From Klebsormidium nitens (lineage: Eukaryota; Plantae; Klebsormidiophyceae), in the NCBI GenBank assembly GCA_000708835.1, contig DF237143.1, forward strand, positions 1-64,000: 64,000 nucleotides of DNA, read 5' to 3'. Positions 939-61,236 of this stretch are shown here, in pieces. The stretch's first letter is position 1. Each line of letters starts with the position of its first letter. The notes below the pieces were generated by a model. It made no database searches. It saw nothing but the letters and a program-made list of their open reading frames with translations, and was not told where the DNA came from. The position numbers and the translations under genes are program-made.

Positions 939-2454
939 CTAAAAACGGTTCAATGTCAAGAATGATTGGAATGCTTGTAAGTTCACCTTGTCCCACTCCG
1001 CTCTCCCCGGGAAGACCTTGACAACCAACTTTTGCAATGTTGGACAAGCAAGTACAAGCTCCAGGGCATCGTCATGAAGGTCCGTGTTGGTGCTGAAGCA
1101 CAGTGCGTAAATCTTGCCGTCAGATGCGAGATGGCATGTCAGGTTTTGGCGGCCGTCATGCACGCGTCCCGTGTAGCAGGGCTCAGACCGATCGGTGTAG
1201 TTGAACCGACCAGGGCCTTCCGGATAGGCCGTGGGATGAAGCTTCTCCCGCAACAAGGTCAACATACGCTCCCTCACGAACGCGCTGTTCTCAGGAGTGC
1301 GGTCATCGAAAGCTGTCAGCTGCTTTGGGTCAGATGGACCCTTGTACAACTTGGCCGGCAGCGTGAATGGGACCTTTGTTATCCGGCAATCCTGCAAAAA
1401 TACAACCTTGATTGGTCAAGCTCGACCAAGGTTCAACATACGAGGGCCGCTAAAAACCAAGAGACTGTTGTACCAGGATCATGTTGATACAGACTGGTCA
1501 AAATTCGTGCACCATCTTGGTACGAGCTTGGAATGCTTGAAGTTTTCGGCTGGCGCCGGGGTTCACATCTGTACCATGATAATGTCAGTTCCCTGGCCAT
1601 ATTCATGCACCATCGCTTCTGGCACTGATGGGCTTTACCCACGCTCGTACAACAATCAGATTCGAGTTCGTACCAAGATGGTGTATGACGTTTGACCACT
1701 TATAGTATACATCAGCATGGTACAACTTCACGAGGAGCATCCTCGAGCAAACACTCACCTCAGGCGACGGCAACCACGTCACCAATGCATCCTTCCACGT
1801 GTGGGCCGGATCGAGAAATTGAAGGACGCTCTCCGGCTTCTCAACTTTTGCACTCCCCGGGGTGCGCCACTCCCGGTCCCTCGTGTACACATCCAGGTCC
1901 AGAAGGTCGGCTACCTTGGGCTCCCAGAGCATCAGCCGCTTCTTTAAGCGGACAGCATAGTCCTTGGCCCCGTCCAACAGGTTTGACAAAAACACCAGCT
2001 GGGGCCCCGTCTGATTGATCGTCAAATGCATGCTGAACTTTGTCTGACCCCCACTCTGCATCCAGACAAAGTTGTCTGGGGCGAGTCTGATGCCGTACTC
2101 GGCTTCAAACACGATTGTCGTCCACTTCTCCTATCTTCTGCATATGATTGCCAAGTACTGGGCGACCGAATCTCCGATTTGCATTTGAGGATCAGTTTGT
2201 CCTTTACGTACGGGATATCCAGCATTGATAAGCTTCTCCAACGTTTCTGGCCGGGATTTCATGCCGGATTGATGGCGATTGAATGCTTTTGTTAGGAGTA
2301 TATCCTCTCGATTGCGATTATAGTAGTCTCTGGCGGTCTTTATATGGCGATCCGGGTGCCTTTTCCCATATTCTCGCATTGATTTACAAATAGAACACAA
2401 GCACGAGCGCAAATCGTCGCTGTACGAATTGATACCGGATACTTGAAGCGTCAT
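939..2454 (-). CDS. Orphan hypothetical protein, predicted 3 exons (2454-2212, 2130-1759, 1391-939)
   Basis: Three minus-strand ORFs join in phase 0 through a GTACGT donor (2211), a TAG acceptor (2131), a GTGAGT donor (1758) and a ttgtatttttgcag acceptor (1392). The first intron's acceptor is weak. No recognisable family. Confidence 0.45.
1470..1723. repeat. Second, diverged block of the same palindromic units (1470-1523, 1571-~1625, 1670-1723), inside the predicted intron 1392-1758
   Basis: It has the same arms and the same 54-bp unit length. It also repeats the linkers of block 73-301 (cggct.gcgccggggttcaca; gtacaa...cgagt.cgtacc) in the same orientation. Confidence 0.87.
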
Positions 2455-2778
2455 AAAGCCTCGTAGAATACATTCAGAAAAAAAAGTACAATCTCCGAAC
2501 GAGCGCGTTTTTCTCAAAAATAAAATGTTCGTCACACAGATCAGTGCCCCAGCCTCACAGCCCAGGCCCCACATCCCTCTGCTGTCTTTCTCTCGAACTA
2601 CTTTCAGTGCAAGAAGTTTCAGTGTTTCTGGCGGGAGTCAGAAGGTTTGGGCGTATAAAGGCACTACAAAGCATCGCCAAGTTACATAGGTTGTACGTTT
2701 GAAACAGGCGTGATTAATGAGCAGCTGTCTGGTACACGTTCTTTTTTCTCTGCCCTGCAAAGTAGGGTCAGCGGGCGC

Positions 2779-5281
2779 ATGGCACGGGTTACAGAAAGTC
2801 ACCTGCATGCAGAGAATGTTGCACCGGATAAAAGCTTCCGAGACCTGGTGCCCATGGGCCATAGGGAAGAGGGGCAGCACCCGAAAGAGGAGATCGTGCA
2901 CAAGAACCCGCTGCTGAGGGTGCTGAGCCTGCAGGCGTTCCGCTCAAAGTCGGCCAAGAAGGGCACTGTGGCAGAGGAGCATGAGGTGGCCCCGCGCCCG
3001 TCGAGAAGGAGCTTAACCCTGCTGCCGTTCAAGCGACGGGCCTCGTTGGACCGGAAACAAGTAGGGGATAAGAAGGAAGGGATCGAGCACAAACAAGTCG
3101 TGGACGAATCCCCTTCTTTGGACGCTGAGTTATCGGAAGAGGAGGGTGAACTCAGCGCCCCCAGTGATGACATCATGTGTACAGAGCCAGCGGGGGCGGC
3201 AGCGCATCCGGAAGGCAGTCAAAAGGGGCTGGTGCCACGAATGCTTGGGCTGTTGAGGAGTGGGTTAGCAGCAACCGGCGACTTGACCAAGCTGCAAGTG
3301 CCCCCCCAATTCAACATGCCCAAGAGCCAGCTGCAGCTGTATGGAGAGGCCATCTATGCTTGCAACCAGGTGAGAGGTCGCGGATATTGAAGCAGGCGCT
3401 AATCTGATTATTGAGCTGAAAACAAGGACAACTATGCATGCATTGATGTCACCTCACATTTGGTTTATGGAAGTAGAGGGTTCCTTCGTTGAAGAGTTAG
3501 GTGGTGAAGTCCCCCAATGTGCTTATTTCATGATCTATCTTGAGGAGTATTGACGAACGCTCCCCTTTATATATCAGCGGTGCACCAATGTAGCACAAGG
3601 CGTTCCCAAGGAATATTCTTCGTCTGACTGCCCCATGGCTGCCAGATTCTCTATGCTGCAATTTCCTGATCCTGCATGCTGATCACCTGTGAGGAAGGAT
3701 TCTTGTGTTGTAGATATCTAGGTACAATTGTACACCTGATACGGTTTTGGGCTTACGGGTTTATCACTCCTTCTCTTGCAGACATTCCTTGCTGCGTGTA
3801 CCGAGGGGGCTTCCCCGCTCGATCGCCTCCTCGCTGTCGTCCGGTGGCACCTGTCCACCGTGCGCTCTCCTCTCTTTGGGAAAGCCCCGTACAACCCCAT
3901 CGAGGGTGAGACCCACCACGTGTCTGCGGGGGGACTGCGCCTGCTAGCCGAGCAGGTCTCGCACCACCCCCCCGTTTCTGCCATTTATGCTTCCCACCCC
4001 TCCAAGCAGACTCGCGTGCTCTGGCAGCACCAGGCCGCGCCGCGATTCACGGGAAGTGCAGTGGAAGTCGCAATCAGGGGGCGGCGGCGCCTCTTCCTGG
4101 ATGCGCATGGGGAGGTCTACGAGCTGGACTCTCCGAACCTGAGCTTCCGGTTGCTGCCGACGCCCCTTGCGCAGTGGACAGGGCACACGCGGGTGGTGTG
4201 CGAGGCTTCGGGGCTGGTGGCGCTCGTGCATTTCAGGGCCAAGGGAGCGTTTGGGTGGGGGAAGGGCCAGGGCGTAAGCGGGAAGGTGGGCAGGCTGGGG
4301 GCCGACGGCGGAATAAAGAAGGGAGGGGAGATGCTGACCATCGAGGGCCACTGGGACGGGTGAGCAAGGCGTGCTCGTTCTCATGTCGGATATTTTCGAG
4401 CCCTGTTTGAAAACATTTTCGAAACATGGTCGAGATACCAAAGCAAAATCTGAATGGCCTGGCGCCCAGTATGTCGATCTTTTGGTACCATTATTTCAAG
4501 TCAACTGAAGGTATCACATGAGTTGAAGTCGCTTGGGCACTCGAGAGGTGATAACACGTAGTTCAGTAGAGAACTTGTTAAAGAGCCTGGAACAGTTATA
4601 ATATCTTAGCACTAATTGCATCACTGGTGGACCAAATGGTTCTCCAAGACGATAATGGGAGACGGATTTGCACGGGATTTCTACGTACAAAACGATGTGA
4701 AGAGGGCTTAGGAGAGGCGCGCCCAGTCGAAGTGAACAGGTCTTCGTGAGAAGATCGAACCTTCAAGAGAAACGAACTTGCTCTTGAGGCCTCTTTCGGG
4801 GTGTTGGTACTGGCACTCTGATAACATTTTGGTCATCAATTGCATGGGTAGCATTTGTACAGGCTTTCTGCTTATTAGATAGGGCCGCATTCAGATGCCG
4901 CCGTGCTGAACACGCTCTCTTCACTTCTTCAGGCTGGTCCACTACTCCGTGAAAGGAAGTAAGAAGTCGATGACCCTCCTGTACGACAGCGCCGCAGCGC
5001 TCCGCGGCATCCACGCTCCGCAAGTCGCTTCCAAGACCGACGTGGCACAGCTGGAGTCGTGCCGCGTGTGGGCGCCCCTCTCCAAGGCTCTTCTCGCCAG
5101 CGACTGGGAGACTGCGCGGAAGACGAAGAAGGGAATCGAAGACAGGCAGCGGCGGATCAGGCGGGAACGGAAACAAGGCGGCGGCGCTTTTGTGCCTGCC
5201 TATTTCAGAGAGAAGGAACCGGGGGAGTGGGTGTGGAAGGGGCCAGGAACGGAGGTGCAGGATGCTCCGCTGGTTTTCTGA
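2779..5281 (+). CDS. ORP4: Oxysterol-binding protein-related protein, plant ORP4 type; exons 2779-3369, 3782-4359, 4933-5281 (~505 aa)
   Basis: OSBP motifs DLTKLQVPPQFNMPKSQLQ, KAPYNPIEGETH, EQVSHHPPVS and WETARKTKKGIEDRQR are present. Splice phases 0 and 2 are consistent. The start codon is uncertain. Confidence 0.9.
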
Positions 5282-6982
5282 TTGTTTACATTTGTTACAA
5301 TTGCGGCACACGAAAATCTATAGGGGATTGTTGAGCATGCTTTTCCGACCAGCCCAGAATGCTTGATTGTTTGTTAGTTACCTGAGCCTCAGTTTGTACA
5401 GATTTGATAGAACGCTGTTTAGATACATCCGTTGAGTATGGAGAGTCGCAAATAATGGTCGGTACCACCTTCATTCTGGCTCGGAAATGAGCTTTGACGT
5501 TTGGAGAGTTCTAATCCAATTACAAAAGATCGCGAAATAAAACCAAGGTTTTTGTCCGGCAAAATGGAACACAATATATAGGACTAAATACACTAGAGCT
5601 CTTTACCAACACTTTTGCTAACATTGAACATGTTCGCCATGAGGAAAATAAGTTGTAGCTCGACATACACTGACTTTTTGGACCTTCTGACCGATCAGAT
5701 ACTTCAACCTTGCATGTGTCGGATTCGCCGTATACATAGTACACCATTTTTAGCCTGTGCTATTCAATCATCTGGTTACGGACGCGGTCGCACCAAATTA
5801 ATCTGGTACGTACGTCTCCATGACCAGGCTTGAGAACTACACCCGGTCGCGGGTGCCTGGGCTGCATGATGAGCCCTGATGTATGATCGGCTGCCTGGCC
5901 GCCGGCCGTGCGGTGGCAACATGCATGGTGCCTTGACTCTGAGTCCAATGGCTTGGCCGGACTGTTATAGTATGGAAGCTAGTCACTGAGTGACTTAATT
6001 ATCTGCACCTGCATGTTGGCAAATTATGCTGAACAGACTCTGAGGTTACAAAACATTCGAACAGCTATATGTATGTTGTAGTGACTTCAACTAGCTGGAT
6101 CGCGCACGGCGGGTCAAGTCGAAACGTACCTCAATCATAAGTTGAATGCGTATCAGTGTGTGGCCCGCGCGCGGGAGCTGGCATGACAGTGATCGACACG
6201 TACATATTTGCAATGCTGGCCGGAGCTAGCGCGCTTACCAACTTAGTGTCTGGCCAGGCGCGACCGGTCGGATGCATGATCCGGTCGCGCCCCATATTTA
6301 CATACGATTAGTTGACGCATGCATGGTGTCCACTGTGAATGATCGTGTCGATCGATCTCAAATTTCCATCGGTCGACTTTGTGCATAGACTTTATATTGA
6401 ACCGGATCGAACTGGCATATATAAGTGATGAAGCGACAGATGTGGCAGCAATCCGCATAACCAAGTACATCCTTCATAGGTTAGAATCATGCAGCGGCTG
6501 CGGCCGCCACAAAGTATATGACTGCATAACATCTCGTGTTTGTTTCAACGTCTTTTTTACGACTCGCAACCCAAGCCTGCTCGATGGCCTACTTCATAGT
6601 CGGATCACTATGCCGTGCAAGCGTGGGCCCTGCTAAGTTCCAAGCTGAAGTACTGCTGAAATACTTTGGACTCGAGGACAGCGTCTCTTCCAGCACCCGC
6701 TTGCCTTTCGGGCCCAGCTTCTCGTGAGGCCATCTTCATTTCGTTCTTAGTCTTGTCAAAACAACCAAGTGAGAATGCCCAACATCTCACAGCCCGACCC
6801 TAATCAACCTCTTAAGAGCTGGCTTCTTTTCGGCGGGTCTTGCTGTCCACTTTACCGCTTGAAAACGGGCGCCGTGGTTGGCGGATTAGTAGCCGTGTAT
6901 CGGATCAGTGGTTAGAGGGAGCCGCGCGTTAGTCGCCCGCTTGCTCCGAGACGGGGAAGCATCTTTGCGCAGGCTGGATCAC

Positions 6983-48832: not shown

Positions 48833-50217
48833 GCAGAGTGTAGACAATCTCCTTGTACTTTATTGCATCGGCAAGTCACAAATATGTCCAACAGAAATGT
48901 TCAGGCAGACCTTACAAATGATCTGCTGTCTTCCTTGCTGAGTGCCAATGTCACACCGTCTTTGTGCATACATACTAACTTCGGAGAGATGTCTATGACA
49001 CGGGTGTAACAACCATGCACGTAACCCAGCTTGCCCGACATTCACTGTCAGGATAGGCATCCGGCACACGCCCCAACATGTGCGTAGTATTGAGGCAAGA
49101 ACCTGACCTGTATGTGACGAACAGGAAAGTAACTGCAAAATGTAATATGGTTGAAAGAGTCAATTAATCTAAGCATACAATTCTCATTGATGTGAGCATA
49201 TGCGTGGTGTACACCGTACTAATCATGGATCGGTCGACAACCATAGGAATTATTCACATATAAACGCTATGCAATTGGTGCTTCAATTAATCAATCATGC
49301 GCACGAATGTGAGAGTCAATTGCATATATTCACGAACATACATTGACTGGTTTAGGTAGTAGTTGTTAACGGGTTTGCACCTTAGGTATAATCAATTTCA
49401 TGCAACTCATTCCGCAGGGCCCTATAAAAAAGTGGTTGAATATATGTACACGTTTAACCAGTTACGCGAGACGTTCATAGTTTATTGTTTCACATACATC
49501 GACCATTTGACTCAAAACATTCACTTATAGCATGTGATTCATAGGATTCGGAAAATTGAATCAGAATCGTCTAACAAATATGATTGTGTTTGAAACATGA
49601 AACATAGATTTCAGCGGTTAGTGTGCGATGCAATTTGGAGAATTTAATTTCAACCAAAGATGGTTTTGAATTGCGTGCATGCTTCATGTGCACGGCTTAG
49701 AATATGCAAACAATAAGATTAGATTAGCCAAAATTTTGGAACATTTATATGTTCCAAAATGTTCCATTATTTCAACAAAATTGTCACACCCAACTTTCCT
49801 ACATCGTCCATACAGCCTGCATGTTCCTACAGTTGCCACTCAACACGGATGCCTAGCTTGCTAATCCTGCTCGCCTAGATCAACGGCCATCACCGTTCCC
49901 GCGCAGATCAGTTTCGACACTCTTCGCAAATGATACACTACAAACGTTTTACCTGCACGGGGACACACAAACTCAATATTCCGCTCACAAGCTTAAGATT
50001 TTGCGTACAACGAAAGAGACATCAATAACCAATTTCGATCTTTAATTACATACGACTCCCGGAAATCCCGCATGTTTCTTAACGGCAGAGATGTCAAGGT
50101 GCGAAAGCACAAGAGGCATTTGGAAGCTTCGGTGACTGAACAACCTCGCACTGAACAAAGCTTGAACATTAGACAAGTACAGATTTGTGAATCAGGCAGC
50201 ACTTACCGTTCGGAGTT

Positions 50218-53200
50218 TTACTGGCCAGCCGAACGCTGGGAGATTTTCTCGCTCGAACCCTCAACCAGGTCAGGGGCAATGTCCTTGGCCCCCTTGTTCC
50301 CAGGGATCAACTGGTCAGCCTGTCAAAGAATGAAATGCAGATTGGAGAATCAGTACCTGGAATCCAAACCAAATCTTCGAAGCACCAGCTTGGCCACACT
50401 ACAACAGCGACCCCAAATTAACTCGACGTCTTGTCAAACCTGTTTTGACAGGGCAGCGGCAAGTTCAGAAGTGGAAGTCGTCGTCGACCAAAGCTCAGAA
50501 TTTCAAGCGCTAAAAGATACACAACCCTGTGGAGCAGATATTCATTGCACATAACAGCAAACCTCGATTATTTTCCAACAGATTGCCGCGTTTTTACCTT
50601 GGGGGGGCTGGGCAGCTTGGAGGCAATGGTCTCGGCGCGCTCCTTGATTCTTCCGGGGATGCTGGCGGGGTCGGTGATTCCACCAACCAGGTCATCCTTA
50701 ACAGTCGCGGGGTCAGCCGGGGTGCCCTTGGTGTCCACACCCACGAACTGGACGACGGGGGCGGAGGAGAAGCTCACGTTGGTGCGGTTGGTCTCCGCTC
50801 CTGCAAGAGAATTGGAGGGTAAAGTTAAATATGATCACTAATCCTGAATCACGCTTACCATGATGAACAGGGAAACAGGCGTGTATGGCATTTTTGATAC
50901 ATCCCCCGCAAATTTTGCTACAAAAAGAACGAGTTCCTGAATATCCAATAGATCGTTTCTCTTCGATGCGCTCCTTCGGCAAGAGAACAAGCATCAGTCT
51001 GTAAATCGAAACATGCTGCCTCAAAGAGAAGAAGCGAGGCGTAGCGGTTCGATGAAGAGATCACGATACACATCTAGTATTTTGTATCAGAAAGATAAGC
51101 AAGCGCAGCCATTTTCTCCAGAAACCCAGTTCTATGAAAACACAAGAAAACAGATTCTTTTTCTAGGACGTATGCCGCTTACCTTGGGAGCCATAGCTGG
51201 GGGCCGAGCGCTGCTGAATCTTCTCGCTGGAGCCTTCAACCAAGTCAGGAATAATGTCCTTGACGCCCTTGTCTCCAGGAATCACCTTGTCAGCCTGCAC
51301 AATGGAAACACTCGTAAGCTTACACACAGACTACTTCACACACCCTATCAGCCTGCTTCAAAGAGAACTATCGGCAGGATCTGTCAATGCCAGGAAACGA
51401 ACCGGGCAGGGCAGTATACAAGGCAGCTCTGCCATGAACCAAAACGAGATAATCCTTAGCGAGTAACAATCTTTGCCGAATGCATCTGTTCCAAGACGAC
51501 AAGGACAAGAGGCGGATGAAATCCAATATGCCTACGTGGCTATGAAAACCCAATGAAGTGGGGAACTCACGTTGGGCAGATCGGGCAGCTTTGAAGCAAT
51601 GGTGCCCGCGCGCTCCTTGATCCGTCCGGGGATGCTGGCGGGGTCGGTAACTCCGCCCACCAGGTCATCCTTAACGGTCTCGGGGTCAGCGGGGGTGCCC
51701 TTGGTGTCAACGCCAACAAATTGGAGTGCGGGGGCGGAGTCCAAGGAAACGTTCTTGCGGCTGAAGCCGTCTGCATCAGTGGTAATGAAGCTAGTTAAAA
51801 TTAAATTTATCGCTCGTCTGCTTCTGCCACACGCACGCAAAGATGTAATCTGTTGGCTAACTCGACGAATGTCGAAGACAGGAAGGCACAGCGAAAATCA
51901 CGTCGATAAACAGTTCATGCTACGCAAAGTAAACAAAGACATTCAGGTTCGAGTGAACAAATAAGACGTAACTTTTGAGAGATGTGCCCCTAGTAATTGT
52001 AGGTGGCAAGAGTGGCTTCATGCTTTCCTTCGCAATATCCGACGATTCTATTCTATCTTCAAAAGCTTACCAGCCCCGTAGTTGCCCAATCCAGGGGCGC
52101 CCCTCTGCCGAATCTTCTGGCTTGATCCCTCCACCACATCGGGGGCCACGTCCTTCAGACCCTTGTCGCTGGGAAGGATCTTGCTTGCCTGCACGCACAG
52201 AATTGATTTTGGTTGTGGAGATGGAAAACTATGGGTTAATGCTTGTACACAGAATGGCAGGACTATTCTATCTTATCACACGCTGCGGAGAGATATACAA
52301 AAAGAAAAAACACATTCATTGACTTTCTCACGACATGAACCTGACGTGACGCACAAAGAGCTCTGTAAGTGAGAGCCACAACCTGGCGTGTGTTGGACAA
52401 AAAGTTGGCCGAAACAGTTGGCCGGGGCGTGCGACTTACGCTGGGTGGGCTGGGCAGCTTGGAGGCGATGGTACCCGCACGCTCCTTGACCCGTCCGGGG
52501 ATGCTGGCGGGGTCGGTGACGCCACCGACGACGTCATCCTTGACGGTCTCGGGGTCAGCGGGGGTGCCCTTGGTGTCCAGGCCCACGAACTGAAGCGCGG
52601 GGGCGGCGTCCAAGGAAACGTTCGAGCGGCTGAAGCCATCTGCAGGTAGGAATATGTGTGAGCAGGAGATTGGAGAGATCGAAAAACGCCCCAGAGAGAA
52701 TGCACCGAAACCTAAGGACGGAATGGAGCTGCACTAGACGGCACATCAGTATCAACAAAAAAATTTACAATCGAAGATATCTCGGTGATCAGCTTGTAAA
52801 GACCAGACATGAAATATGAAAGACACAAGTTATCATTGTCAAGGGATCTGTATTGACAAGTGATATGTTTAGGCTACACGAACGATTCGCCACAAGCTGA
52901 CGTACCTCCGCCGTAGTTGCCAAGGCCGGGGGCGCGCCTCTGCTGGATCTTCTGGCTCGAGCCCTCAACCACGTCGGGAGCCACATCCTTCAAACCCTTG
53001 CCGCCGGGAAGGGCCTGGTCAATCTGCAAGCGGATCCCGCGAATTTTCGTAACACATTCAAGAGAAAAGTCGGTTCTAACATCTCATCTAACTTCTCAGT
53101 CGTGTCAGTTGTGCCCAAGAGAATTTTATTATAACTTCCCACACGTGTCAGTTATACCCAAGAGAAACTTAAGATAACGAAGTGTTTGTGCTGTGTGTGC

Positions 53201-56200
53201 CAAAACGGTCAGGTGATAACATGATGAAAAAATAGCCTTCTGAAGCTTCATACGACGAGAGATTTGTGCACAAGCCATGAGGAAGCAATGACAGGTGTGC
53301 CGCACACGTTTACAGTCACAACAATCCGAAAGTTTTCTGAAGAGGATTAAGACTTACGTTGGGAAGATCAGGCAACTTGGAAGCGATGGTACCCGCGCGC
53401 TCCTTGATCCTTCCGGGGATGCTGGCGGGGTCGGTGACACCACCGATGGCGTCATCCTTGACGGTGGCGGGGTCAGCGGGAGTGCCCTTGGTGTCCAGGC
53501 CCACGAACATCAGGGGAGCGGACTCGGTCATGCTCACACCCGTGCCCGCTGCGAGAGAAGAACTTTCGATTTGGAAAAAGAGAAAGCAAGAGAATTATGG
53601 ACAGACAAGGGATGTACACGTCGAGCCAAAACAGTATTTGAGTCATAACATTGTGGCCGCCAAGGTTGTGCGGCGTTCTGGCTGACGAAATCAACCGAAA
53701 CATATTCTCATTCTGTCCAACAAGATCGTGCATTATTCTGGCTGACGACATCGTCCAAAACATGAACGATAGCCCAGCGCTCAAAACGGCTAGATGACAG
53801 AGGACAATGCGTTTCGAAGCTCACATGCGTAACCTCCCTTTCTTTGCGGGATCTTCTCACTGGAGCCCTCAACCAGGTCGGGGGCCAGGTCCTTAACACC
53901 CTTGTCCCCGGGGATTGCCTGGTCAGCCTGCATTCAACGGATGAAATCGTAAGGGGTGTGAAAAGCTCTCGTAAAATGCAGTCTTTTAGTTTTAATACCT
54001 CCAACACGACGGCTGCCAACACTGTGCTCAGCGATCTTGATTACTGCGACATGCGGATGGGCTACTACGCTTCCAACGCAGACCTGTACGTATCTCTGAG
54101 TCCAAAGCGACAAGCAGAGGAATCTTCGTATAAAAGTTCCCTGTCTTAAAGTACATGAAATAAGTTTTCAATCTGCGAAACGTGTTGACAGATATCAACG
54201 CTACAAGGAATCTCACGTTGGGCAGGTTGGGCAGGTCGGGCTTCAGGTTGCCAATTTTGGAGGCGATGGTGTCGGCCCGCTCCTTGATACGTCCAGGGAT
54301 GCTGGCGGGGTCGGTGACGCCACCAACGACGTCTTCCTTCACAGTCTCGGGGTCGGCGGGAGTGCCCTTGGTGTCCAGGCCCACGAAGGTCAGGGAAGGA
54401 GCGGAGGTCATGCTCACGCCCGTGCCCGCTGATACAAAGATAATCCCGCTTTGAACGAGTGAACGAGTGCAACGCGAAGAAAAAGTGGGTCTTTTGAAGA
54501 CCTGAAGGACCTAAAGCGAATCCCGTACAATCAAAGAACACCAAGTCCATTGGTGGTGCGGGTTGTGAAGACTACGCCAACGTAGCAAGCTTCCCAAACA
54601 CTCAAATGTGCATAAAATGGCTGGCAGGTGAGAAGGGCTGTCCTGAAGCGACAGCTTCGCCTACGAGATATCATCACGAAGAAGAGGTGCCTCGTAGACT
54701 TACAAGCGTAGCCGCCCTTCTTTTGCGGGATCTTCTCGCTGGAGCCCTCGACCAGATCGGGGGCCAGATCCTTCACACCCTTGTCCCCGGGAATTGCCTT
54801 GTCAGCCTGCATCACAAAGAGTCATCCTTGTTACTAGGTCTGTCCAGAACAAGCGAACCCGTTGAATAACTTAACCATCTTCGGTACGATCCTGAAGCTC
54901 AAAAACGGTGATTCTCCGCACCCACAAGCTTTCTAAAGGCTCCTTGATCAGTTGAGCTTACAAACCGGTCAAGTCCTTGGTATTTTCAAGTGTCGGAAGG
55001 AAGCTTGACCTGTCTGCAGCGTACGAGATCTGGGACCACGATTGTGGACAACTGACAGAACGAGCATTTGCAGCTAGTGCTTCAAATCAACGTTAAACGC
55101 GTTCACTTTCGAAACTTCTTGAAACGGCGACTCACGTTGGGCAGCTCAGGCTTCAAGTTGCCAATCTTAGAGGCGATGGTGTCCGCACGCTCCTTGACAC
55201 GTCCGGGGATGCTGGCGGGGTCGGTGACGCCACCAACGACGTCATCCTTGACGGTAGCGGGGTCAGCGGGGGTGCCCTTGGTGTCCAGGCCCACGAAGGT
55301 CAGGGAAGGAGCGGAGGTCATGCTCACGCCCGTGCTCCCGCCCTCTACAAAAAACAATCGGGAACAAGTCAAAAGTCGTACCACTTCACGTATGGGCGAA
55401 ACATCAAGGTCAAGTCCCAAACCGATGCTGCGAAAACAACGAGGTCTCCATATCTGTCGCTTCATCCAATCTGGTTGGGAATGACCATCAAAATGCTGTT
55501 TTGAATTTTCAAAACAGCTGATAATCAGACCTCTCTTCTTTGCAATGGATAGAGCAAGAAGTTGAACAGACTTACTGGGATCGGTTCCCGCCCTTGGGCC
55601 AACTGTTACACTGCTGGAGCCCTCGCTTTGGCGGGGGGCCACGTTCTGAACTCCCCGGTCATTCCTGCCAACCTCCTGGTCAGCCTGTGAACGAAAATAA
55701 CGAAATCCGTCAAGCTGATTTTCATTCTGTGAGAAAACCGATTGAAATTGGACTTTTTAAGGCCCAAATGTTGCACAACGCCTGGTACACTCAAAGGCTA
55801 CTTCTAAACAAATCCTATTGGTCAACTTCTCGTACACAATAGTAGAAACAATATCGTCTGCGCAACATTCCACAGTTGAACCAGCTTAAGAAGCTCACTG
55901 GATAGAGAACGCTGCCATAATCTCATCGTGGCCTGTGCACGCCACACAGTAACTTCAGAGACGACCGAAGAGAAGATGCCGAAAACGAGGTAAGCCAAAG
56001 GCAAAGACGCACGCTGGCACCAGTCGGCAGGTCGGGCAACACTTGGCCAATCTTGGAGGCGATAGTGCCCGCCCGCTCCTTGATTCGTCCGGGGATGCTG
56101 GCGGGGTCTTTGACGCCACCGATGGCGTCATCCTTGACGGTCTCGGGGTCAGCCGGGGTGCCCTTGGTGTCGACCACGTAGGTGAGCTGAGGAGCAGCCG

Positions 56201-59200
56201 AGAAGCTCACGTTCTGACCGTCGCGCTCTGCACCAGACGAAATGGAAGAGAATGATACGCGTACTTCAGATAGACGTTGGCCGACTTGCGGTTTGCTGTT
56301 CACGTTTAACGGCAACTGAGCATGACATGAAAACCGGGTCAATAAATTGAATACAAACTTGGTTTTATTTAAAATCTATCGGATGATTCCTTGGAATGAC
56401 CAGACCGACAATCTCACTAAACCGACAAACAGAGGCAAGATAACGGAGCTGACACAATCTTCGACGTCGTTCGTTTCACTACGAGCCCTGAGTCTAAGAC
56501 AAGTCAACGGCGTTCAAGTTCGGGCAACAAGAGCAAGTAAAGTCGCGAAGGGCACAGACAAAAACGTTTTAACACCAATCGATGACACAATCCCCTGTAC
56601 GTACTTCCAGTGCCGTAGCTGGGGGCTGAGCGCTGCTGAATTTTCTCGCTGGAGCCTTCAACCAAGTCAGGGATCACGTCCTTGACGCCCTTGTCTCCAG
56701 GGATCACCTTGTCAGCCTGAAGGCAAAAACCGAGGAAGAACGTCAGATTGCGGTCTGCGAAGACGGCTTAGCGCACACGAACGACTGTACGGTTGTTTCC
56801 TTGTACCTTCCTCAAGGAAGAGTTCAACATTCGATTAGGAAGCTCAGTACCGGCCAAGGCCGTCCTACTTCATCTGGCCCTCGACAAATTGTGGGGGACA
56901 AAAATTTCGAGCTTCGTCATGCTCCTTCGCTTTAACGAAGAGAAGTTGCTATCAACGCAAGCAGTACCATGAGTTTTGGCATTTTGAGTTTCGACATTTG
57001 ACGTAACGTACATTCAGATCGGGGGTCAACTCGCCGATCTTGGAGGCGATAGTGCCCGCACGCTCCTTGATACGTCCAGGGATGCTGGCAGGGTCCTTGA
57101 CGCCACCGATGGCATCATCCTTGACGGTCTCGGGGTCAGCGGGCGTGCCCTTAGTGTCGACCACGTAGGTGAGCTGAGGAGCAGCCGAGAAGTTCACGTT
57201 CTGACCGTCGCGCTCTGGACCAGACCAATGAAAGGGATTGATACGTGACAGCCGGACAAAAGCTGACCTACTGACGGTTTGTTGTTCTCGTTTGCAACAA
57301 CGAAGGGAGCAAGATACGACAGTCAAATAGATAGGCAGATAACAACCCTGCTCCTTCTACGAAACGCGTTCAACTAATTCATTCAAGGGATACAGAATGA
57401 AATCTCCCTGGACCGTTCAAAAACCCGGTGCTAACGCAACCTTTGCCATCGCTCGTTTCACGAGCAAACCCGGAAGTGAGATCACACTAACTAAAAGCTT
57501 CAGTGAAAGGAGCAGCTTCGCCACACGCAAACATATATCGACCAACCAAGAGAGGGTCTCCCCTGCACTCACTTCCGGTGCCGTAGCTGGGAGCTGAGCG
57601 CTGCTGAATCTTCTCGCTGGAGCCTTCAACCAAGTCAGGAATGATGTCCTTGACGCCCTTGTCTCCGGGGATAACCTTGTCAGCCTAAAAGGCAAAAAAC
57701 CGAGGTGAAGCGTTAGGTTGCTGTAATTGTTTACGAACCGGCTTGACGGAAATTACTGCACACGAACAAACTGCGCAACTGTTTCTGTGCGATCATTTCA
57801 AGAGATAGAGCTCTAAATCTGGCTGGGAAGCTCAAAATTGTAGAAGGCCATCCCACTTCATTTGGTTCCAACGAATTTATTGCTGAGGAACCCGAAACTG
57901 TCAACACTTTGTCTGCTTCCTTCTGCTTTGAAGCGAATGAAGAGGCTGCTATCAGGAAGAGGCTGCTATCAAGAAAGTCACGAGCAATGCTATGAGTTCC
58001 GACATTTGAAAGTCAACAGATAGGAAACGTACATTCAGGTTAGGGGTCAACTGGCCAATCTTGGAGGCGATGGTGTCAGCACGATCCTTGATACGTCCAG
58101 GGATGCTGGCGGGATCGGTGACCCCACCGACGGCATCATCCTTAATGGTCGCGGGGTCAGCAGGGGTGCCCTTGGTGTCAACCACGTAGGTGAGCGGGGG
58201 AGCCTCCGTGAAGCTCACATTCTGGCGCTTGAAACCCTCACTCACTGTAAACATGGGAAATTGGATCAAGTAAATGTCTTGGCAAATCTTGTCCTCACAC
58301 GAGGTGTTTCAACATCACCTATCATCATTGCAGGTAGTGCTAAGCTAACTCAAAAGAGCGGGGCATGCCCGGCAGGCTCCACCCAATTGGAGAATATAAA
58401 TTGCAGCTCTCCAATGGGTGAAGCGAGGCAAAAACTAAGTCTATTGGGCACAGATGGCTTGCAGGATAAACGGTAAGGGGAAAGGATGAGTTCTCACAGC
58501 TCTTAGCTCCAAACTTGGGCGCGCTACGCTGAGGAATCTTGCCGGCAGTTGCCTCTGCCAGGGCGTTCTTCTTGTTAAGGGCATCCAGATTGGGGGTGAA
58601 CTGCATGGAAATCGACATGAAGATGTGTCAAGAAAGGCCGAATGAAATTGTAACGAAGATTGCACAGGGTTTGCATGTATGCAGTGCCAACTCACTAGAC
58701 CGTAATCGGACATTCTGATAGTTACGACCTGACTGCAAGGATGCTGACTCCCTCACCCAGACAAAACAAAAGAATGGCAAAGCAGCTTGCAAATGGACGC
58801 ATATGAAAATAGGCAAATAAGGGAGAGTGCTCAGAAACTCACTTCCTTAGCCTGCTTGCCAGCCTTCTCCACCTTCTGCGCAATTTGCCCCCACCGCTTC
58901 TCAACAACAGGGATGGTATCGGCATAGGCAGGCCCTGCAGATGTGGCGAGGGTCGCAGCCAGAAGCCCGGCGGCAAGACCTTTCCTCAGGGGGGCAGACA
59001 CCTGCAAGAAATAGTAGTTTGTATTAAGCTTAGTCACTTCTGGAAGTAAACTCAAACGGGACTCTAAAATCACCACCGCAGCAACCTGCCTGCGAGGAGG
59101 TCTGTGTTCAATTGCACCAGAACTCTTCCCAGATGCGGACCCGGCATTGGTTGATGCAATTGAGAAGAGGGACTTCAAGAAAGTAAATTACTTGGTTCTA

Positions 59201-59938
59201 GACTGTATCACTGTTTACGGGGGAACTGGAGAAAGGGGTTCCATCTTTCAATATGAGAACAGGCAAGCCTACGTGCAGAAAGCCGCCGTTTGCCAGAATG
59301 CGTCTTCACAGGATAGCTGGTGAGCTCGCTAGCGTTTCTGCAGGACTCCATGGCACATGGAGCGCTGTAGCACCAGCTCACCTAGTGGCTACCTTGCCCT
59401 ACATTTGAATCAGTGCCCGAGTAAGACGAAAAGCACAATGCCCCACGTTTTATCACTCAATTCAATGGAAAGCATTGCAGAGAGACAATCCTGAGTCTTC
59501 CGTCAGAGGCTGGAGGTTTCGTGACTTCCGCTTTCAGATTTGCATCCTGCAGTGCTGTGTGAGAAATCAAATCCTGCGGCACTAATCTCAATGCAGCTCA
59601 ACCACATTTTTCTGAACGCTCTGGCCTCCTTCTTCCATTTTCCTGAAACAACTTGATTGCCGAACTAAGTCGAACATGACTGCAATATTGTCTTAGACCT
59701 GATCAGAAAGGTTCCAGAGTTCTGCGAGTGAGCAGCATTCTCCTACCTTGTTCGTCTCATCCTTGGATGCTGACATGCACACCTTCCCCTCAGAGCGTCT
59801 GGACGACCTGACGCAAGGGACAGAGATGCGAGCTCCTGTGAAGGTGCTCTTTCCAAGAGTGCTGCCTGATGCGGCAACCCCCTGTCCCAGAGCAGCCTTG
59901 TTCAAGGTCGTAGCAGAAACCATGTTTGCAGAAGCCAT
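50218..59938 (-). CDS. Uncharacterised ~1,095-aa tandem-repeat protein with predicted chloroplast transit peptide and thylakoid-lumen signal; 21 exons
   Basis: Exons: 59938-59747, 59001-58843, 58600-58498, 58244-58033, 57684-57573, 57214-57012, 56716-56605, 56227-56013, 55684-55576, 55344-55136, 54806-54704, 54428-54217, 53927-53825, 53548-53358, 53023-52906, 52639-52440, 52188-52071, 51770-51571, 51294-51183, 50800-50598, 50319-50218. They total 3288 nt, all GT-AG and in frame to TAA. The N-terminus is Ser/Ala/Arg-rich, followed by LRKGLAAGLLAATLATSAGPAYA|DT. Confidence 0.87.
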
Positions 59939-61236
59939 TTTCGTACTGTACACTGTACAAGGAGCAACGCTGTGGAGGTTCGCTTGCTTTCGCGCTGATT
60001 GACGTTTTGCTAAACTGGTGAAGGCGGCCGTTCGCCTGCTTTACAATCGAAGCTGGGGGAGCGAAGTGAGATTCTTGGTTCGCCTCGAGATTCTTCCTCC
60101 GAGTATCTCCAGTGTCAGCTGCAATAAGGGGACCGTTGAAAGCGTTCTTCTTTGCAGAACAGGACTCGTGCGTCTGTGCCACGTAGGACTCCCCCTTCGC
60201 TTGCGCCTGCATGAGAATTGCTCAAACCTGCTAGGTACAGAGACGGAGGGCAACACTTGGCTCCCCCATTGGCCTCTGCTTGATGATGGATAATGCGTCC
60301 CGCCAGATTTTTGCTCCAGCGTTCTGCATGTTGGGCACGGCCTGCATGCAGAGAGGCTCTGCTTACAGCTCTGCATGAAGATACACGAGAAGCCGTCTCG
60401 ACCGCAGGATGATGCCGGCTGATCGGCATCGGACGGCTGCGAAGGCTGTTAGAATCGTGGCATGCACAGAGTTGCATGCACGCTTCCGAAGGTTTCCGTA
60501 CGGTACGATGCCGTCGGGGCCCAGGCGGCGCGCAAGGCGGCCGCGAAGTCAATGCGCGGCCGGCCGCGGCTGCCCTAGCCTAGCTAGATCTTCATGTTGA
60601 TGGAAATCCCACATCGACGGTTGAGGCTTGCGTCCAGTGATGGACGTCGATTTGCACCAGGTAATAGTAGTGTGTCGTCACGCCCTAACCGGGTGCCCTG
60701 GTTCGGAATAGCTTATACCCCGGGCTCCTGGTCGGAGTATTGGCAATTGCCAGCCTTGGTCTGCGCCTGGTAGGTGCCCGGGCTAATTGGGCGGAGGACC
60801 GGGTTGACCTGGTTGAAGTCCCCACACTGCCTGTTTCGAAATCTTCGGGTCAATCACCAAATTTGCGGAGCCCATGCATTTACTTCTGGGATTCTGTTGC
60901 ACAGCGGGATTAGGGAAACGGCTCTCCATCTCCACGGTTTAACCAGTCCACCAAAGCACTGCTTCTATACAGAGCACTGTCGGGCGAGGTAACCGCGCTA
61001 ACGAGCTCAATTTGGCAGCAGACAGCTTTGCAATGTGCACAGGGCGCCGGATGAAGCGGAGGCGGGACAAAACGATTGCATCATTTCAGAGCTCCATCCT
61101 CTGCTCTTCAATATCAAGTGCTGCGGCTAGGAAAAGGTGCTTCCAAGTTCCAGGGATTTCCAGCATTTCAAAAGATGCCGACTACGCTGACCAACTCCGG
61201 TCATTGATCTCCGGCCCTGTCGCCCTACGGCGAGTA

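Follow-up and report, generated by a model that had tools for sequence, protein, structure and literature searches.

The first 64,000 nucleotides of contig DF237143.1 of Klebsormidium nitens (assembly GCA_000708835.1, forward strand; "the window") carry, on the minus strand at 50218-59938, a gene for a long repeat protein that probably acts, to judge from its sequence, as a floppy and many-armed protector or scaffold in the thylakoid lumen. It is a genuine, transcribed, and lineage-restricted gene of a Klebsormidium-type streptophyte alga. Its product combines a bipartite, lumen-type presequence with nine copies of a 40-residue core (the B core) that alternate with A modules, and every copy of the core is under strong purifying selection. 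We tentatively favor the reading that the product is an orphan, largely disordered, multivalent lumen protein imported via the Sec pathway, which would work as a protectant or spacer resembling the late embryogenesis abundant (LEA) proteins and dehydrins, its nine cores binding reversibly.

Gene structure and transcription

The gene starts with an ATG at 59938, ends with a stop codon whose last position is 50218, and consists of 21 exons and 20 introns. Every intron is of the GT..AG type and 231-745 nt long, and the phases are consistent across a coding sequence of 3,288 nt, which specifies a precursor of 1,095 aa. The splice sites were set by phase and GT..AG, starting from stop-free frames with alternating A and B motifs along 50.2-58.3 kb. 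Exons 1, 2, and 3 are followed by nine (B,A) pairs, in which the nine B exons encode 63-72 aa and the nine A exons 33-39 aa; a degenerate A-like tail is present already in exon 3. Both Cys residues are encoded in exon 1 and the sole Trp in exon 2. A preliminary description of this DNA, made from the letters and their open reading frames (ORFs), had placed a protein of ~1,095 aa at 50218-59938, and the 21-exon model matches both the length and the coordinates exactly. The same description stated that the repeats lack Trp and Cys, which is the case, and His is missing from them as well.

Sequence words of the gene were found in 20 public runs of eight studies at a share of 0.24-0.49, and in most of these runs at 0.24-0.26, which fits exons only. 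Contigs from four RNA-like runs (four studies) were aligned to positions 54000-59990; the runs are not recorded as RNA, the label "RNA?" being a guess, and as contigs they do not allow levels to be ranked. In the contigs of these runs, 11 of the 11 introns within this interval are removed (CT..AC on the plus strand), including the 745-nt intron between the transit-like exon and the signal exon. One run (X1) also contains a few intron-retaining contigs at a depth of 6-27, compared with 1,400-6,800 for the exon contigs (~100-fold). The splicing together with these low-depth intron-retaining contigs makes the data look like RNA. In exon B4, contigs of the RNA-like runs show single-base differences at 55199 and 55235 (A>C and A>G), which may be alleles or the result of cross-assembly between near-identical B exons.

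The borders in the 3′ half of the gene rest on phase and GT..AG, on L002, which is a relative's natural spliced mRNA contig of 1,438 nt, and on the junction peptides of P0003, the protein that L002 encodes. The blastn pieces of L002 stop 1-4 nt from the predicted borders at the lower ends of B6-B9 and A8 and at the upper ends of A8 and A9. Moreover, the P0003 junction peptides (…KLPSPPK/TDQLIPG… and …SYGSQ-G-PETNRTNVSF…) mirror the window joins B9/A9 and A8/B9, respectively.

The presequence and its predicted destination

Residues 1-54 include 22 Ser, Thr, and Ala residues, one acidic and seven basic residues, a composition typical of transit peptides. The first residues encoded by exon 2 are VSAPLRKGLAAGLLAATLATSAGPAYA, with D next, and the full lumen-type signal reads LRKGLAAGLLAATLATSAGPAYA, again followed by D, with a predicted cut after residue 91. 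The signal can be divided into an n-region (LRK), a 16-residue Ala/Gly/Leu h-region, and a c-region (GPAYA) before the D. The h-region is the only hydrophobic stretch (Kyte-Doolittle mean 1.5 in a 15-residue window), and after it come a helix breaker and AYA/D. Inspection of the sequence thus finds all parts of the bipartite presequence of lumen proteins, i.e., transit peptide, n-, h-, and c-regions, and AxA. In the window and in both orthologous loci (see below), the n-region is L-R-K-G and lacks the twin arginine of the Tat route. The Sec pathway transports unfolded substrates and does not require a twin arginine; the single R-K in place of R-R points to the Sec route, which would also suit an unfolded chain. 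From these features, we infer that the protein is addressed to the thylakoid lumen. The 64-aa first segment and the cut after about residue 91 that had been proposed for a bipartite presequence are both reproduced, and this presequence is real: the spliced mRNA contains it, and both orthologous loci keep it as coding sequence.

Because no Met codon precedes the signal in exon 2, translation has to begin in exon 1 for all products. Here, the context of the main ATG is strong (A at -3 and G at +4), while the upstream ATGs at 60212 and 60269 are weak. In the probable 5′ leader (window 59790-60269, minus strand), the ATG at 60269 opens an upstream ORF of 12 codons, and the one at 60212 starts an ORF of 140 aa in another frame, which extends across the main start at 59938. 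An in-frame Met55 (MSASKDETNK...) is kept in both orthologous loci.

Repeat modules and their conservation

The B core is 40 residues long (DTKGTPADPxTVKDDxxGGVTDPASIPGRxKxRAxTIASK) and is present in nine copies. Across 18 B units from two species (alignment A1), 24 columns are invariant. For the nine cores in the window, the mean proportion of nonsynonymous differences (pN) is 0.056 compared with a mean synonymous proportion (pS) of 0.35, and the cores of B2 and B3 are identical peptides at a pS of 0.30. In a self-blastn comparison, the similarity between units ends at the exon borders for nearly all pairs; the exceptions are two older traces in introns, and B1-A1 and B2-A2 are the only pair with a 74% trace through an intron. 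The high pS, the low pN, and the mostly lost intron similarity together indicate that the duplications are old and that each copy has been held at the protein level.

The two orthologous loci, L001:4792-12161 (169-kb contig) and L003:5353-13840 (51-kb contig), come from one JGI metagenome. In both, exon 1 remains coding (MASANMMSAT…KDETHK, then GT), the signal exon is near-identical (APLRKGLAAGLLAATIATSSGPAYA, followed by DD…VEQRWGQITQK), and exon 3 is kept. The module numbers are nine B and five A in L001, ten B and six A in L003, and nine B and nine A in the window. L001 and L003 both have exons in which two or four B cores directly follow one another, with a period of ~50 aa (P0001). Hence, the B valency is 9-10 in all three complete genes despite three architectures, and the multivalency that had been proposed for the protein holds for every complete orthologue. 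Just upstream of the orthologue in L001, at 2497-3903 (+), a 468-aa ORF looks retroelement-derived.

As 9-10 B cores are kept while the number of A modules varies, the unit that is conserved and can be counted is the 40-aa B core, with A as a looser spacer. The nine modules of ~105 aa, each with an A and a B part, that were first described are present as nine B/A pairs; the functional unit, however, is the B core, since the relatives repeat B back to back without A. Exon A3 is degenerate (38% identity to A1) yet spliced in frame in all four runs, which suggests that selection on the A modules is looser than on the B cores. The possibility that A and B are diverged copies of one unit was considered, as MAFFT superposed them, but it was discarded given an hhalign probability of 0.2%.

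Relatives and searches for known families

A profile built from the 18 B units was scored exhaustively against 1.84 billion representative proteins and gave 11 matches. Of these, seven represent pieces of this gene in close relatives, and they come from JGI metagenome and metatranscriptome contigs and from Logan assemblies. P0008-P0011 (E 2.5e-9 to 2e-4) were rejected as relatives, because their composition and first 400 residues look like those of unrelated repeat proteins. A word search yielded two proteins, and the B-core profile found no second gene. The A module was searched with Pfam, and the B-profile matches also include A. The related-locus search of metagenome contigs returned nothing, which is read as a blank of the method and not as evidence, given that L001 and L003 are themselves JGI metagenome contigs.

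In Pfam, seven exons gave no match at E<=10, and P0003 and P0001 gave short sub-threshold stretches only. FokI_D3 (26.6 bits versus a cut-off of 29.2), TGT_C1, CBM_15, HMD_N, and DUF7234 cover 18-45 residues below their curated cut-offs and were taken as chance. The best matches among PDB sequences had E values of 0.09 (P0003) and 1.2 (B profile), a feature search of the ESM Atlas yielded no match that could be used, and the collections searched hold no full-length model of the protein. Consequently, no characterized family came out of the Pfam, PDB, and profile searches, in agreement with the preliminary description, in which no family had been recognized. No publication on this protein was found in the literature. 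Klebsormidium stress transcriptome studies list many unnamed "hypothetical proteins", which cannot be linked to the gene without a gene identifier.

Composition and predicted structure

Removal of the 91-aa presequence leaves a mature protein of ~1,004 aa and 103 kDa, with a pI of ~5.2, 26% charged residues, a net charge near zero, 21% Pro and Gly, and 2.6% aromatic residues. It is a near-neutral polyampholyte. A role as a calcium buffer or pH switch was considered and rejected, because the net charge is near zero and shifts by only ~2 units between pH 7.5 and 5.8.

The B core is a charge dipole, with an acidic, Pro-rich first half and a basic second half. Along the core, the hydrophobic moment does not exceed 0.3 in the acidic half, whereas its maximum, ~0.5, falls in the basic half. 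At the mature N terminus, the helix candidate VEKRWGQIAQKVEKAGKQ has a significant moment of 0.60, a value reached by 0.3% of shuffles.

The AlphaFold2 model of B alone (18-row alignment) has a predicted local distance difference test score (pLDDT) of 56 and a predicted template modeling score (pTM) of 0.16. It is coil, save for a four-residue helical turn (30-33) and a longer helix at RIKDRADTIASKI. The natural A-B-A segment of P0003 (17 rows) is predicted as nearly all coil, with pLDDT 53 and pTM 0.11. The two models, weak but consistent, predict no folded domain per repeat, as would be expected from the first description of the protein as a possibly disordered chain.

Proposed role and alternative explanations

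In the reading that we tentatively favor, the N-terminal 64 aa would direct chloroplast import. The signal, with its single R-K, weak Ala/Gly/Leu h-region, and AYA/D, would then take the unfolded chain through the thylakoid Sec machinery into the lumen, where the thylakoidal processing peptidase would cut after AYA and the chain would stay largely disordered. Each B core may consist of an acidic, Pro-rich, extended half and a basic half (GRIKERAxTIASKL) that forms a short, class-A-like amphipathic helix. The nine B sites would provide reversible, high-avidity binding to the anionic lumenal face of the membrane or to the surfaces of lumenal proteins. Thylakoid lipids include the anionic sulfoquinovosyldiacylglycerol (SQDG) and phosphatidylglycerol (PG), and Klebsormidium tolerates desiccation and freezing. 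The function would be LEA/dehydrin-like, i.e., shielding and spacing of thylakoid membranes and lumenal proteins as this aeroterrestrial alga dries or freezes.

Several observations weigh against this proposal. The evidence for disorder consists of the composition and of low AlphaFold2 confidence, and since the alignments were shallow (17-18 near-identical rows), a low pLDDT is weak evidence. In the charge-hydropathy (Uversky) plot, the protein falls slightly on the folded side (H 0.446 versus a boundary of 0.416), a placement that results from the nil net charge. The proposal that the protein may be largely disordered agrees with its composition and with the AlphaFold2 coil, and not with the charge-hydropathy plot. 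As for the helix in the B core, it is seen in the B-alone model and is not reproduced in the A-B-A model, and its moment is not significant relative to shuffles (11-13%). Moreover, the mRNA was assembled in all 20 runs that contain the gene, which suggests constitutive expression, and no LEA or dehydrin model was matched in Pfam at E<=10. Finally, 40 contiguous conserved residues are tighter than the usual LEA motifs and fit a specific partner better than generic shielding of membranes.

Such a specific partner is the basis of another explanation, which we regard as not very likely: a lumenal multivalent linker in which each B core binds a specific folded protein (candidates are a CAH3-type carbonic anhydrase and the extrinsic subunits of photosystem II [PSII]), possibly in pyrenoid-traversing thylakoids, giving a gel or condensate in the lumen. 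Conservation of the core is very tight, both among the copies and between species, and the valency of 9-10 is kept while the architecture changes; the predicted arrangement of disordered spacers and one short helix per core would also suit a linker. Known linkers, however, are strongly basic, while the net charge here is near zero, and the lumen is narrow and crowded for a 103-kDa chain. It is also conceivable, though unlikely, that the protein is a disordered multivalent lumen scaffold of ~100 kDa whose 9-10 binding cores build a gel or condensate that organizes an enzyme such as CAH3 in pyrenoid-traversing thylakoids, or that sets or protects the width of the lumen during drying; this would be the first of its kind. 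Near-identical units, purifying selection on each copy, and the direct concatenation of B cores in the relatives would in addition be compatible with a polyprotein precursor that is cut between units into many peptides of ~40-50 aa. The linkers, however, hold no conserved processing motif, neither dibasic nor AxA, and we know of no precedent in streptophyte plastids, which makes a polyprotein highly improbable.

Other explanations place the protein outside the lumen. A start at Met55, kept in L001 and L003, would give a textbook signal peptide for the endoplasmic reticulum (ER), and capture of the h-region by the signal recognition particle (SRP) would likewise lead to a secreted or cell-wall Pro-rich glycoprotein. 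Here, the N-x-S/T sequons before six of the nine B cores, the Pro-rich linkers (LPSPPS and LPDLPN), and a Pro, Ala, Ser, and Thr content of ~35% have to be set against the first ATG, which has the strongest context, and a transit peptide of typical composition that the orthologous loci keep as coding sequence. In addition, the hydrophobicity of the h-region is weak, B4-B6 and the core itself have no sequons, 26% of the residues are charged, and there are neither repeats of the extensin or arabinogalactan protein (AGP) type nor a glycosylphosphatidylinositol (GPI) signal; a secretory fate is therefore improbable. We consider it decidedly improbable that the protein enters the plastid and is kept out of the lumen, with the h-region an uncleaved anchor or ignored and the repeats in the stroma, for example as a linker of Rubisco or starch in the Klebsormidium pyrenoid. 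With 16 Ala/Gly-rich residues, the h-region lacks the length and the hydrophobicity of a stable transmembrane helix, and it is followed by a canonical helix breaker and AxA. In addition, the pI of 5.2 is not basic, and the repeats lack the Trp or Arg motif of known Rubisco binders, even though Klebsormidium has pyrenoids and the tandem, disordered, lineage-specific architecture is like that of EPYC1 or PYCO1.

Exon map

The coordinates of the exons and of the parts of the presequence are listed in Table 1. Exon B9 has a NAGNAG tandem acceptor at 50801/50798, where use of the alternative site would gain or lose one residue. The many plus-strand ORFs of 40-140 aa in 50000-58300 (e.g., …LEAMVPARSLIRPGMLAGSVTPP…) represent the repeated B exons read in antisense and are not genes.

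Table 1. Features of the repeat-protein gene in the window, in the direction of transcription
Feature	Position	Strand	Basis
5′ untranslated region, part covered by the contig alignment	59939..59990	-	RNA contigs run 279-324 nt past 59990
Exon 1, 64-aa chloroplast-transit-peptide-like segment (MASANM...KDETNK)	59747..59938	-	spliced to exon 2 in four runs; ORF kept in L001 and L003
Exon 2, first 27 codons, lumen-type signal	58921..59001	-	near-identical in L001 and L003
Exon 2, remainder: mature N terminus, amphipathic helix candidate VEKRWGQIAQKVEKAGKQ with the sole Trp	58843..58920	-	kept in orthologues
Exon 3, degenerate A-like tail (…AGKIPQRSAPKFGAKS)	58498..58600	-	splice joints in RNA-like contigs, translation, A alignment
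Exon B1	58033..58244	-	splice joints, translation, B alignment
Exon A1	57573..57684	-	splice joints, translation, A alignment
Exon B2	57012..57214	-	splice joints, translation, B alignment
Exon A2	56605..56716	-	splice joints, translation, A alignment
Exon B3, core peptide as in B2	56013..56227	-	splice joints, translation, pN/pS comparison
Exon A3, degenerate A module, in frame	55576..55684	-	splice joints; 38% identity to A1
Exon B4	55136..55344	-	splice joints, translation, B alignment
Exon A4	54704..54806	-	splice joints, translation, A alignment
Exon B5	54217..54428	-	upper border is an RNA joint; lower border inferred from GT, phase, and homology
Exon A5	53825..53927	-	GT..AG and phase
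Exon B6	53358..53548	-	GT..AG and phase; L002 mRNA alignment stops at 53357/8
Exon A6	52906..53023	-	GT..AG and phase; L002 mRNA
Exon B7	52440..52639	-	GT..AG and phase; L002 mRNA
Exon A7	52071..52188	-	GT..AG and phase; L002 mRNA
Exon B8	51571..51770	-	GT..AG and phase; L002 mRNA
Exon A8	51183..51294	-	GT..AG and phase; L002 mRNA
Exon B9	50598..50800	-	GT..AG and phase; L002 mRNA matches 50795-50598; junction peptides match P0003
Exon A9, including stop codon 50218-50220	50218..50319	-	GT..AG and phase; L002 mRNA matches 50316-50225

Implications

By current understanding, most proteins of the thylakoid lumen are small and globular. If the favored reading is true, an abundant, disordered repeat protein of ~100 kDa would be a new kind of lumenal component, and we know of no scaffold-type organization of the lumen in any phototroph. 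The protein could bear on how aeroterrestrial streptophyte algae, which serve as models of the transition to land, keep their photosynthetic membranes intact through drying and freezing, and on the placement of lumenal enzymes in pyrenoid-traversing thylakoids. If it is secreted or stromal, it would be one more lineage-specific repeat protein of an ordinary kind. In addition, the gene offers a clear example of an orphan repeat protein, in which 40-aa units are held by selection while the architecture of exon modules turns over between close relatives.

Comparison with known systems

The presequence resembles that of PsbO, PsbP, PsbQ, and plastocyanin, in which a transit peptide likewise precedes basic residue(s), a hydrophobic core, and AxA. 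Unlike these small and globular proteins, the mature chain here is ~100 kDa, repetitive, and predicted to be coil, and R-K replaces the twin arginine. The pentapeptide-repeat proteins TL15, TL17, and TL20.3 combine repeats with a lumen address as well, but they are folded beta-helices of 5-aa repeats that are recognized by Pfam; the Pfam Pentapeptide model had no match in the seven exons or in P0003. With respect to AGPs and hydroxyproline-rich proteins, the signal lies 64 aa from the N terminus, the Pro, Ala, Ser, and Thr content of ~35% compares with an expectation well above 35-50%, the charged fraction is 26%, and SPPPP arrays are absent, so the protein does not belong to these classes.

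Dehydrins and LEA proteins, including the stromal COR15A/B, are likewise hydrophilic, poor in aromatic residues, and predicted to be disordered, and the host tolerates drying and freezing. They share repeated segments with a possible amphipathic helix, which here ends in K-L-P and recalls the ...KLPG of the K-segment. The motif here differs in being 40 aa long, Pro-rich, and near-neutral, and the predicted compartment is the lumen. The dehydrin model PF00257, with its EKKGIMDKIKEKLPG-like K-segment, gave no hmmscan match at E<=10 in the seven exons and P0003, and the LEA_1-6 and SMP models in Pfam gave none in the same sequences. For the functional class of LEA-like proteins, which are hydrophilic, disordered in solution, helix-forming when dried or bound to membranes, and induced by stress, the composition and the AlphaFold2 coil agree, the charge-hydropathy plot disagrees, and the helix moment is modest. 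No lumenal LEA protein is described in the titles and abstracts returned by a literature search on LEA proteins, the thylakoid lumen, and desiccation.

EPYC1 of Chlamydomonas and PYCO1 of a diatom are alike in their lineage-specific tandem repeats, disordered chain, single short helix or motif in each repeat, and rapid turnover of architecture. Both are stromal, strongly basic, and bind Rubisco, in contrast to the lumen-type signal and pI of ~5.2 found here, and there is no sequence similarity. Mackinder et al., in 2016, are said to have screened for EPYC1-like proteins by tandem repeats, disorder, and high pI. Where at least three tandem repeats of ~40-80 aa in a disordered chain are looked for, the protein has nine B cores at a period of ~105 aa (~50 aa in the relatives); where a pI >8 and a stromal location are looked for, it has a pI of ~5.2 and a lumen-type signal. 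The protein is thus a member of neither group: in its proposed function it is most like the LEA proteins and dehydrins, and in its architecture it is like the EPYC1-type linkers.

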